Below, in pieces: positions 5,026-28,767 of a DNA stretch of 64,000 nt (position 1 is its first letter; each line of letters begins with the position of its first letter). Origin of the DNA: Anaeramoeba ignava BMAN (taxonomy: Eukaryota; Protista; Anaeramoebae). The stretch spans positions 251,466-315,465 of the forward strand of contig JAPDFW010000082.1 of NCBI GenBank assembly GCA_028826165.1. The letters are read 5' to 3'. The notes under the pieces are model-generated. The model was not told where the DNA came from and did no database searches. It worked only from the letters and a program-made list of their open reading frames with translations. A program made the translations under genes and the position numbers.

Positions 5026-7436
5026 ATGAATTTAAATTTAATAACTTACATCATAACAGCAATATTTTTACTACAAACAATCAAGACACATCCCAAAGTA
5101 GTAATAAACAACATAACAAAAGAAGAAACACGAAACGAAACAGAAACAGAAATTGCAGGATACACATGTTATTCAGGATATATATTAGCAAACGAGACAT
5201 CAGGAGCGTATCTATTTTTTGTTTATATAGAACGAAACACGAGCAATCCATTGCAGTTAGTACTAGCAGGAGGACCAGGATGTTCATCTTCAGATGATCT
5301 TTTTCTTGCTCTTGGACCATCTTTGATCCAACCTGATGGATCCTTTATAAACAACTCTAATGCATGGACTGATATCTTCAATCTTCTCTTTATTGATAAT
5401 CCTGTTGGTTCTGGTTATTCTTATATTGATGATCCGGATGGTTATCCTACTAACCAATCTTTGGTTTCTCAACAACTTTATACTTCTTTATTGGTCTTTT
5501 TTGATAAATATAATATCTCACAAGATAAAGATTTTTATATTTATGGTGCTAGTTATTGTGGTAAATATATTCCTGCTTTGGGATATAAGATTTTACAAGA
5601 AGGTTTTGTTATTAATTTGAAAGGAGTGATTATTGGTAAGTTTTCCAAAACTAATTTTAATTTTATAAATGAATTTTAATTTTAATTTTAATTTTAATTT
5701 TAATTTTGATTTTAATTTTAATTATAATTTTAATTTTCAAAATGAATTTTAATTTTATTTTTAATTTTAATTATAATTTTAATTTTAATTTTAATTTTAA
5801 TTTGAATTTTAATTTTAATTTTAATTTTAATTATGATTTTAATTTTAATTTTAATTTTAATTTTCAAAATGAATTTTAATTTTATTTTTAATTTTAATTA
5901 TAATTTTAATTTTAATTTTAATTTTAATTTTATAAATGAATTTTAATTTTAATTTTAATTTTAATTTTAATTTTAAATTTAATTTTAATTTTAATTTTAA
6001 TTTTAATTATAATTTTAATTTTAATTTTAAAAATGAATTTTAATTTTAAATTTAATTTTGATTATAATTTTAATTTTAATTTTCAAAACGAATTTTAATT
6101 TTAATTTTATTTTTATTTTAATTTCTAAATTTAATTATAATTTTAATTTTAATTTTAATTTTAATTTTCAAAATGAATTTTAATTTTAATTTCTAAATTT
6201 AATTTTAATTTTAATTTTAATTTTAATTTGAATTATAATTTTATTTTTAATTTTAATATTAATTTTAATTTTAATTTTAATTTGAATTTTCAAAATGAAT
6301 TTTAATTATAATTTTAATTTTAATTATAATTTTAATTTATATATTAGGTGATGGAATAACAGATCCAGTAAGTCAAATGAATTATTCATATTATGCATAT
6401 GCAACTGGATTAATTGGAGAGTTACAATATCCAATAATTCATGCAAAAGAACTTGAATGCGTAAATTTAATGCAAAATGAAAGTTGGTTAGATGCAGCAA
6501 ATTGCATGATTGATATTTGGGGAGAAATTGTTAACATGTCTGGAGGTGTAAATGTTTACGATATAAGATTATATGGAGATTATAATTTCACAGCATTAGA
6601 TAACTTTATGCAATCAAACTCAACAAAAGAAACATTTGGAGTTGATTTGAATACAACTTGGTGGGATTGTGATGGTCCTCCAACTCATTATTTATACGAA
6701 GATATGCCCAAATCAGTTAAATCAGATTTCGAGGCTCTTTTGGCAAATGGAACCAAGATTTTCTTATATACTGGTCAATTTGATTTAATCATTACTTTGG
6801 TTGGTTCTTTGAATTTTTTGAGTAATGTCAATTGGGAATATATGGATGATTTTAATAATTCTACAAGAATTATTTGGAAAGTTGATGATGAAATGGCTGG
6901 TTTTGTTAAGCACTATAAAAATCTTTGGTTTGGAACAATTGTTGGTGCTGGTCATTTAGGGTAATTAATCTTCAAAATAAATTTCATTTTTATTATTTTT
7001 ACTAATTTCAATTTTCCTTTTTTTCAAAAACAAAATAGAGTTGTAAGAATTTTTTAAAAATCAATTTAAATATTAATTTAAATATTTGATTTAAATATTA
7101 ATTTAAATATTGATTTAAATATTAATTTAAATATTTATTTAAATATTAATTTAAATATTGATTTAAATATTAATTTCAATATTTGATTTAAATATTTATT
7201 TAAATATTAATTTAAATATTTGATTTAAATATTAATTTAAATATATTAATTTAAATATTAATTTGAATATTGATTTAAATATTTGATTTAAAAATATTTG
7301 ATTTAAAATCAAAAAATGAAATTTAATTGAATTCTGTTTTTTCCTTTATTAACCATAATAATATTATTAGGTTGATCAAGCAAAACACACTCATAATTTA
7401 GCTTATCGTTTCGTTAATGATCTTCCTTTCGATTAA
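5026..7436 (+). CDS. Secreted serine carboxypeptidase (peptidase S10); exons 5026-5635, 6348-6960, 7039-7042 (4-nt micro-exon), 7371-7436
   Basis: Signal-peptide-like N-terminus; GGPGCSS, IDNPVGSGYS, catalytic GASYCG, GQFDLI, and AGHLGVVDQ matching AGHxxxxDQ. Confidence 0.93.
5655..6335. repeat. Intronic (TTTTAA)n array
   Basis: Visible hexamer tandem in S10 intron 1. Confidence 0.9.
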
Positions 7437-7575
7437 TTTTTTTTTCTTTTTTTTCTTTTTTTTTTCAAATTCAAAATTCAAAAAAAAAATTATCCAAAAT
7501 AAAATTGGATGGAAAAAATCAAGGATTTAAAAAAAAATTCAAATTTTAAAAAAAAATTATTTGAATCAAATTAAA

Positions 7576-10313
7576 TCACCAACCAAGCACTTGTTGAATA
7601 CTTTTAATTAAAATATTTGACATTATTGCATGAGCTTCAACATTCTAAAAAAAAAAGAGGAAAGGAAAAATTAATTTAAAAATTATTAATTAAAAATTAA
7701 AAAAAAAGATTCCAAAATTACAGGCTATTCAAAAAAAAAAACTTTAAAATAAGAAAAAATTCTTTAAACAACCAAAAAAAAAACTTAATCAAATTACACT
7801 AAAAAAAAACAAGAAAATTAAATTTGTTAGTAAAAATTATAAAGTATTATTTAAAAACAAAAAAATAACAAACTGTGTTTGGCAACCTTCAAGATCTGGA
7901 GTAAGAATATTTGTCCAATTAACAAAATAGACATTTGGTTGTTCAAGTGAGATAATTTCTTGAATTAATTTAACTGGATCACCATACCTTTTAATATTCA
8001 AAATAATATTCAAAATAATATTTAAAATAATATTTAAAATAATATTCAAAATAATATTTATATTAATATTCAAATTAATATTTAAAATAATATTCAAAAT
8101 AATATTCAAAATAATATTCAAAATAATATTCAAAATAATATTCAAAATAATATTTAAAATAATATTTAAAATAATATTCAAAATAATATTTAAAATAATA
8201 TTTAAAATAATATTTAAAATAATATTCGAAATAATATTCAAAATAATATTCAAAATAATATTTAAATTAATATTTAAAATAATATTCAAATTAATATTCA
8301 AAATAATATTCAAAATAATATTTAAAATAATATTCAAATTAATATTTAAAATAATATTTAAAATAATATTCAAAATAATATTTAAAATAATATTTAAAAA
8401 TAATATTTAAAATAATATTTAAAATAATATTCAAAATAATATTTAAAATAATATTTAAAATAATATTCAAATTAATATTTAAAATAATATTCAAAATAAT
8501 ATTTAAATTAATATTTAAAAATAATATTTAAAATAATATTTAAAATAATATTTAAATTAATATTTAAAATAATATTTAAAATAATATTTAAAATAATATT
8601 TAAATTAATATTTAAATTAATATTCAAATTAATATTCAAAATAATATTTAAAATAATATTCAAAATAATATTCAAATTAATATTTAAAATAATATTTAAA
8701 ATAATATTTAAAAAAATATTCAAAATAATATTCAAAATAATATTCAAAATAATATTTAAAATAATATTTAAAATAATATTTAAAATAATATTTAAAATAA
8801 TATTTAAAATAATATTTAAAATAATATTTAAAATAATATTCAAAATAATATTTAAAATAATATTTAAATAAATACATTGGACCAGTAGTTATAAACATTG
8901 GGATATCTCCATAAAAATATCGATAATGTGATATTAAATCACGATATCCTTTGATAAAAACATCATCATCTGGATGAGCTATTATTAAGATAGTAAAAAA
9001 AATTCAGAGAATTAAAAAAAAAATGAATATAAAAATATAAGAATATCTGAAAATATGAAAATATACGCAATGTAGAATAATCATTTCCACCAAGATGAAG
9101 TACCATTGCATCTGGTTGCCATTTTGAATAATCCCATGAATATTGTTCTGATGTATTTGAACGGAGACTACTATTCATATAAAATCCAAAAGGACGTGCT
9201 GATGTTTTATTTGGATCGCCATAATTTCTAACAACTCCAATTCCAGAAATAGCTTCAATAAAATAATCAGCATCAAAATATCTAGAAACCTAAAATTAAA
9301 ATGTTATTTTTGAATTGAACGAAAAATAATTTGTGGTTTAATTATTAATTTTATTTTCCAATTTATTCTTACAACAGGTCCATCTATTTTGGGAATATAA
9401 ATATATAAATATAAATATAAATATAAATATAAAAATATAAATATAAATATTTACAAGCAAGATAAACGTCTTCAGTTTCTGCACTAAATAAAAATAAAAA
9501 TAAAAATAAATATTTAAAATATTTAAAATAAAAATAAATATAAATATAAATATAAATACCTAAATGGTTCATCAATAGATTTACACTCATCTCCATATCC
9601 AGCAACTACTGAATCACCTTTAAACAGAAATTCAAAAAAATTAAAATTTGAAATCGGATAAAAAATTAAATTAAAAAATTAATAAATGTTTTTTGTTTTT
9701 TGTTTTACCAATAAATTCAAGTTTTCGATTTTTTAAACTTTTTGATTCTGGATTGACATATAAATTTATTCCACCATCAATAATGGCTCTATAAAATTTT
9801 GCAATTGATAAAGCTTCTGTTCTTTTATATAAACTAACGCTATAAGTTTGTGAAGGATCCAAATTAGAAGCAATCTGATATCTTGTTTTTCCTTCATTTA
9901 CAATTAATTTAAGTTCTGAAGTTATATTAATTTTTGAATTGAATGATTGAATTATTATTTGGAAAATATTGGATGTTGTATCAGCTTCTAATGATCTTTT
10001 GTTTTGAGGAAATTTTTGAACATCATCAAATTCAACCCAAATTTCTTGTGTTGATGAAACATTAAATTGTAAATAAACTCCCTGTTTATTTTGGATAAGA
10101 ATTGATTTTAGTTAATTTTTTTTTGTGAATTGTTTTGATTTTTTATTATTTATTGTTATTTTTTTTTTGTACTGGCCAATCAATTATTGCACAATTTTCT
10201 TTTGAATCAAAAACAAATCTTCCAATAATTGAAACACTTGAATCACCAAAAACTTCTAAAATTAAAGAAAAGTAAAATAAAAAACTGATAAATTTTGAAA
10301 AATTTTGTTTCAT
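7576..10313 (-). CDS. Secreted SGNH/GDSL esterase, CE2 (acetylxylan esterase)-like; 11 exons: 10313-10173, 10081-9709, 9617-9560, 9483-9455, 9383-9373, 9289-9067, 8978-8876, 7987-7874, 7798, 7724-7722, 7644-7576
   Basis: Spliced product: signal peptide, IIGRF...IDWPG, LYKRTE, LEFIGDSVVAGYG, ETEDVYLAYG, ISGIGVVRNYG, PDAMVLHLGGND, GCQTHPNVEAH. All junctions are GT-AG. Confidence 0.88.
7992..8868. repeat. Intronic 12-mer array AAAATAATATT(T/C)
   Basis: Period-12 tandem in esterase intron; produces the spurious NIIL ORFs. Confidence 0.92.
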
Positions 10314-28597: not shown

Positions 28598-28767
28598 ATA
28601 TAAATTTATACATACTTCTAAAAAACAAAAAAAATTAATTAAAAATTAATAAATAAAAAATTAAAAAAAAAATTTTTACAAATCATTTTTTTTTTTACAT
28701 TTAAATAAAAAAAAATTTTATAAAAAGCAACAAAAAAGTCAAAAAAATTAAAAAAAAAAACCATAAA

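Follow-up and report, generated by a model that had tools for sequence, protein, structure and literature searches.

Can the catalytic His-Pro of an esterase be encoded by an exon of one nucleotide followed directly by an exon of three? The question is raised by a gene of the protist Anaeramoeba ignava on the minus strand of the window analysed here, a stretch of 64,000 nt (C83:251466-315465, C83 being the contig that carries the esterase gene, in an assembly of 42.8 Mb and 147 contigs). A sequence-only reading of the window had joined an exon ending in CA to a single T, then to the codon CCT, then to the last exon, which gives the peptide GCQTHPNVEAH. Every exon and intron coordinate that it listed between 7874 and 7644 proved correct on re-reading of the sequence, and its His-Pro was borne out by a transcriptome-derived protein together with a unique splice path.

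Gene model and the path to His-Pro

The esterase gene has 11 exons (141, 373, 58, 29, 11, 223, 103, 114, 1, 3 and 69 nt) that make up 1,125 nt and encode 374 residues, and a search of the whole assembly found one such locus. Its features, in window coordinates, are the following.

10173..10313, minus strand: exon 1, 141 nt, with the start codon; 47 of 47 residues equal the EukProt transcriptome protein
9709..10081, minus strand: exon 2, 373 nt, covering the greater part of a putative N-terminal beta domain of CE2 type (CE2_N, E 0.01), with one residue, K97Q, unlike the EukProt transcriptome protein
9560..9617, minus strand: exon 3, 58 nt, the GDS motif with catalytic Ser174
9455..9483, minus strand: exon 4, 29 nt, matches the EukProt transcriptome protein
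9373..9383, minus strand: exon 5, an 11-nt microexon required for frame, matches the EukProt transcriptome protein
9067..9289, minus strand: exon 6, 223 nt, carrying the oxyanion-hole residues Gly220 and Asn273
8876..8978, minus strand: exon 7, 103 nt, with an exact junction to exon 8 in an RNA-run contig
7988..8875, minus strand: intron 7, 888 nt, full of an AT-rich tandem repeat of about 12-nt type, removed in the RNA-run contig
7874..7987, minus strand: exon 8, 114 nt, whose 3' end is CA, the first two bases of the His351 codon, followed by GTTTGT
7799..7873, minus strand: intron 8, 75 nt, with the non-consensus donor GTTTGT; a rival donor, the one GenBank uses, lies 4 nt inside at 7869
7798..7798, minus strand: exon 9, 1 nt, T, the third base of the catalytic His351 codon
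7725..7797, minus strand: intron 9, 73 nt, GT-AG
7722..7724, minus strand: exon 10, 3 nt, CCT, the single codon of Pro352
7645..7721, minus strand: intron 10, 77 nt, GT-AG
7576..7644, minus strand: coding part of exon 11, 69 nt, 22 codons and the stop; a C-terminal helix that ends in the family's terminal Trp

The N-terminus encoded by exon 1 is hydrophobic and, judged by eye, resembles a signal peptide. The 29-nt exon 4 and the 11-nt exon 5 that follows it are both confirmed by the transcriptome protein, and the GenBank annotation is correct for both.

The introns around the two smallest exons had been described as canonical and of normal short size, and so they are: introns 8, 9 and 10 measure 75, 73 and 77 nt against a published genome mode of 76 nt, and all six of their ends, read from the genomic sequence, are GT or AG. 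Their donors (GTTTGT, GTAATT and GTAATT) do not carry the U12 5' motif (G/A)TATCCTTT. The published genome of A. ignava BMAN is about 81% A+T and has 32,108 introns of modal length 76 nt, with non-canonical ends in 0.17% (PMC11550330). Intron 8 contains a branch-site-like CTAAC 32 nt short of its end, and among 37 local introns no other has that motif within its last 60 nt; the branch motif reported for A. pumila is CT(G/c)AC, and this one case is only a hint of a branch site.

Exon 9 is flanked by AG upstream and GT downstream, sits between introns of plausible size, and is needed for both the frame and a conserved motif. When the 229-nt stretch was shuffled with dinucleotides preserved, a bare AG-N-GT arose in 2,408 of 20,000 shuffles (12%) and a canonical path restoring His-Pro in 23 of 20,000, so the signal lies in the reading frame and the motif.

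Transcript evidence came through a chain of searches, in which the exons alone led to a homologue in A. flamelloides and that homologue, used as the query, led to an A. ignava protein in EukProt. This protein, EP01156_Anaeramoeba_ignava_P022603, reads GCQT-HP-NVEAH. Compared exon by exon with the genomic model it matches all 11 exons, with the single whole-codon difference K97Q. Its record is named c20849_g1_i1.p1 (ORF type complete), a format we take to be that of a de novo transcriptome assembly. All splice paths from exon 8 to the last exon were then enumerated with GT/GC-AG introns of at least 20 nt, and exactly one, with exons of 114, 1, 3 and 69 nt, gives the transcript peptide; permitting AT-AC introns returned the same single path. 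On this protein-level evidence the mature mRNA encodes His-Pro, and this path is the only one able to give it. We infer from the uniqueness of the path that the T at 7798 is the letter of exon 9.

A CE2-like esterase and its catalytic histidine

The closest solved structure to the protein is Clostridium thermocellum CtCE2 (PDB 2WAO), with an E value of 1.5e-26. Ser174, Gly220, Asn273 and His351 align with Ser-612, Gly-658, Asn-705 and His-791 of CtCE2, so that the Ser-His dyad of carbohydrate esterase family 2 (Ser174 and His351) and its oxyanion-hole residues (Gly220 and Asn273) are both present. In CtCE2 the mutations S612A and H791A each abolish esterase activity (PMC2661963). Among aligned homologues His351 is conserved in 115 of 116 and Pro352 in 113 of 116, and the spacing from the Gly to the His-Pro is three residues in 94 of 120 homologues. 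The CE2_N profile (PF17996) scores the A. ignava protein at 24.8 bits, below its cut-off of 27.9, and the A. flamelloides orthologue at 29.1, above it.

By its sequence the product is a CE2-like SGNH esterase with a Ser-His dyad and predicted activity. Like CtCE2 and carbohydrate esterase family 2, it has an SGNH domain, with a putative beta domain at the N-terminus, and it has no triad Asp, as in dyad-type CE2 enzymes. It differs from CtCE2 in being eukaryotic, encoded by an intron-rich gene and predicted from sequence. The A. ignava esterase has Gln-Thr before the His where CtCE2 has Asp-Trp, and therefore lacks a Trp platform at that position.

Translation of the possible mis-spliced products indicates what each microexon contributes. 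Skipping the 1-nt exon had been expected to frameshift the last exon, and it does, but the His codon itself survives as CAC; the product reads His-Leu, stops six residues on and loses the C-terminal helix. Skipping the 3-nt exon deletes the Pro, as had been foreseen. Skipping both, or retaining intron 8, removes the His.

Splicing of the crowded introns

The one public RNA run found to contain the locus was examined over 7440-7995, clear of the long repeat, through reads assembled into contigs. An Illumina-type contig joins exon 7 exactly to exon 8, which means that the run contains spliced RNA, and it then stays unspliced through 7873-7704, retaining introns 8 and 9 and the start of intron 10. 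Since 114 nt separate the exon 7-8 junction from the retained introns and the reads were assembled with 31-letter words, the two may come from separate molecules. No spliced contig across the microexons and no contig on exon 11 was found in this run over that stretch; because variants are lost when contigs are built and part of the records is filtered out, the missing junction is no refutation. The contig covers 7704-7987, where it departs from the genome assembly at two places only: position 7948 has a synonymous change, and a poly-T tract at 7774 is 2 nt shorter. It independently confirms the genomic letters at both microexons, and the sites are thus not assembly errors.

The unspliced contig fits slow removal of introns 8-10, or a library with much nascent RNA. 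The genome paper reports a library depleted of poly(A) RNA (PMC11550330), and introns beside plant microexons are reported as detained or unspliced (PMC8831610). Retention is not specific to the microexon introns, since Trinity isoform i5 of the transcriptome cluster retains intron 6.

The transcript data and the assembly differ in K97Q, in the synonymous change at 7948 and in indels in introns 6 (8979-9066) and 9 (7774), pointing to a second allele, a strain difference or an assembly error.

We consider it very probable that this is a CE2-like SGNH acetyl-esterase gene (Ser174-His351) whose active-site loop is split by three spliceosomal introns of normal size placed 1 and 3 nt apart. Each of introns 8-10 would be recognised across its own length of about 75 nt, by intron definition, and the three would be excised one after another. 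A spliceosome is too large for splice sites 1-3 nt apart to be used simultaneously; two spliceosomes cannot share such sites, so removal must be sequential. If either exon or both were skipped, the intron to be removed would measure 149, 153 or 229 nt, which is two to three times the mode of 76 nt, and this difference would favour the correct path. Removal is probably slow and would leave retained-intron intermediates. Intron definition with sequential removal has also been proposed for APC11 (PMC4674806). By analogy with plants, the downstream intron would be expected to go first and intron 8 last. The sequence-only reading had proposed constitutive microexons and splicing by intron definition only, both of which may hold. 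The cassette would be a gene architecture maintained by selection for the active site.

A regulated switch, in which retention or skipping of the tiny exons disables the esterase under some conditions by making a truncated or Pro-less protein, seems unlikely. It would suit the single contig obtained, with its retained introns 8, 9 and start of 10, and the fact that each skipped or retained product loses the His, the Pro or the last helix; in a convergent neighbour gene, too, a 4-nt exon appears to be needed immediately past the catalytic His. Against this, no isoform skipping the microexons was found among the three members of the transcriptome cluster, where one isoform includes them, intron 6 is likewise retained in one isoform, and retained forms are expected as nascent RNA.

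It is highly improbable that the His-Pro arises by another route, such as RNA editing where the junction reads QF, splicing at non-canonical sites to 4 nt within the intron 10 pyrimidine tract, or a second copy or allele with a contiguous His-Pro. The evidence for His-Pro is indeed at the protein level, and the differences between transcriptome and assembly (K97Q, the intron 6 indels and the SNP at 7948) would fit the existence of a second allele. Editing, however, would have to make three changes, of two kinds. Non-canonical introns make up only 0.17% of those annotated, and no alternative GT/GC-AG or AT-AC path exists. A second copy is opposed by the single locus in the assembly, and a second allele by the variant-bearing RNA-run contig, which keeps both microexon sites.

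The GenBank protein KAJ5072202.1 reads GCQT-QF-NVEAH, with the catalytic His missing. Its exon list was deduced from its peptide, and the QF is the product of the GTTATT donor at 7869. This model, a single 225-nt intron giving a catalytically dead protein, is in frame, canonical and publicly annotated, but that it is the correct one is highly improbable, given a de novo transcript protein with HP, a His that is nearly invariant among homologues, and an active-site Ser, Gly and Asn that are all intact. The GenBank annotation missed the 1-nt and 3-nt exons and lost the His, as the sequence-only reading had anticipated for automated annotation. That reading had also named an mRNA from the GTTATT donor as an example of a form that would count against it; the form exists as the GenBank model and is contradicted as the main form by the de novo HP protein.

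Tiny exons in the genome and their origin

A scan of 264 kb of C83 found that AG-N3-GTA sites show a peak and cluster in two ankyrin genes. Positions with the prefix L are local coordinates within the contig (L004:5503 = C83:65503).

C83:114492-118483 (L009:4492-8483), plus strand: ankyrin gene with a long last exon and a Pfam BTB match; eight pairs of predicted 3-nt exons
C83:65503-61708 (L004:5503-1708), minus strand: ankyrin gene with seven predicted 3-nt exons, all omitted by GenBank
L004: 5349; 5108/5053; 4795/4735; 4478/4409, minus strand: the 3-nt exons of the second gene, from sequence

In the first gene one pair of 3-nt exons lies between successive repeat exons of 93-99 nt, and GenBank omits all 16. 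Protein searches for transcript versions of the two genes returned GenBank models only.

A genome-wide scan for such patterns was run as TTTTAG-N(k)-GTAA and came out positive for 3 nt and negative for 1 nt. For k = 1-5 the counts were 77, 167, 571, 75 and 134, with about 126 expected per offset; enrichment is seen at k = 3 alone, often with sites clustered a few hundred bases apart, and 1-nt candidates show no genome-wide excess (77 against about 126). A reversed-pattern control was set aside, being inflated by GATTTT repeats. Four of the 24 local 3-nt exons fit the strict TTTTAG-NNN-GTAA, and together with the genome-wide excess this would imply, very roughly, about 2,700 3-nt exons in the genome. 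Since 1-nt sites are not in excess, the 1-nt exon of the esterase stays an extreme case even where tiny exons are habitual.

Several other sites were noted. The convergent serine carboxypeptidase-like gene at 5026-7437 (plus strand) appears from its sequence to need a 4-nt exon, AGTT (7039-7042), right after its GAGH motif; the flanking introns are 78 and 328 nt, the frame shifts without the exon, and the intron upstream of it has CTAAT 37 nt before its end. At 28612-28617 (minus strand), between two A+T-rich intron-like stretches, there may be a small exon whose ends could be set in three ways (AG-AA-GT, AG-AAGTAT-GT or AG-TAT-GT). An isolated AG-AAA-GTAAGT at C83:102075-102077 (L008:2075-2077, minus strand), in A+T-rich DNA that lies upstream of a coding region, is a possible 3-nt exon outside the ankyrin genes. 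L004:5587-8739 (plus strand) is an open frame of 1,050 codons with a RING-finger-like start and long Asn/Gln/Glu repeats, and it sits opposite a simple-repeat DNA strand.

As for the origin of the esterase introns, the A. flamelloides orthologues are intronless in two strains, although the species has about 39,000 introns genome-wide (PMC11550330 supplement), and are sister to the A. ignava esterase in a quick tree (SH-aLRT 100). A Pelomyxa homologue has five introns, none at shared positions and none near the His-Pro. With these three comparison genes, the simplest reading is a gain of introns in the A. ignava lineage, most likely including introns 8-10, in a genome that would be tolerant of very small exons. 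Loss in A. flamelloides could explain the pattern instead. Recent duplication of introns 8-10 from each other is not supported: the pairs score 40, 59 and 40 where the background is 32 +/- 8 and reaches 71 at most, all in low-complexity sequence. Lateral transfer of the esterase gene from bacteria was considered; Pelomyxa is among the nearest tree neighbours.

The sequence-only reading had held that 1-nt exons are extremely rare, with one reported, in APC11; this understated the literature. Spliceosomal 1-nt exons are published for Arabidopsis APC11 (PMC4674806), plant VPS55 (PMC8831610) and Fusarium CYP621A (PMC12940212), and Coprinopsis cinerea has 13 microexons of 1 nt, 57 of 2 nt and 27 of 3 nt (PMC12230235). 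Adjacent microexons of 5 and 12 nt have been validated in rice (PMC8831610).

The CYP621A exon is like that of the esterase in being a GT-AG 1-nt exon in a conserved enzyme motif, frame-critical and missed by annotation, with transcript support and an intronless homologue as a length marker (PMC12940212). It supplies the middle base of a structural Gly in the PKG motif, is a solitary microexon with larger exons on either side and has been conserved across at least 20 species, whereas the esterase exon completes a catalytic residue, has a 3-nt exon directly after it and is lacking in the sister species. The plant APC11 and VPS55 exons are likewise spliceosomal, frame-critical and misannotated, with sequential intron-defined removal proposed and flanking introns detained; unlike the esterase exon they are old, land-plant-wide, single, flanked by longer introns and experimentally validated. 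C. cinerea shares with A. ignava a short-intron genome with many tiny exons, but it is fungal and has no 3-nt peak, where A. ignava has a strong peak at 3 nt only. The A. ignava ankyrin genes, in the same genome, resemble the esterase in their runs of 3-nt exons with introns of 55-100 nt between them, omitted by GenBank. Their 3-nt exons all have phase 0, leave the frame intact and fall within the variable loops of proteins from a large family. The esterase gene is single-copy, and its 1-nt exon shifts the frame and sits in a codon that is invariant.

In the searchable literature, which covers few subscription journals, we found no paper pairing 'microexon' with 'metamonad'. Nor did we find there any 1-nt exon described as lying within a catalytic codon or as having a 3-nt exon directly after it, and the supplements of the A. 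ignava genome paper mention no microexons. The esterase is a tandem pair of 1-nt and 3-nt microexons building an active site, in a lineage for which we found no published microexons.

One tentative and rather doubtful view of the genome is that A. ignava has undergone a lineage-specific planting of new introns 1-4 nt from existing ones, with serial splicing that sets no lower limit to exon size. The esterase would then be the extreme, frame-critical case in a class of 3-nt exons that numbers roughly in the thousands, and enzyme output could be gated where such cassettes lie beside catalytic His residues and are removed late.

Backed by a transcript, the locus takes splicing to its physical limit: exons of 1 and 3 nt stand in succession, and five bases of active-site sequence, counted from the last base of the codon that exon 8 leaves split, are drawn from four exons. 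Within the searchable literature it adds a eukaryotic supergroup to those in which spliceosomal exons of 1 nt are known. It offers a natural substrate of 230 nt for the order in which closely packed introns are removed and for what blocks skipping, and the intronless orthologue makes the origin of the adjacent introns testable. The public model makes an intact enzyme look like a pseudo-enzyme, and because the same error is found in the ankyrin genes, A. ignava needs re-annotation of both its proteins and its intron counts.
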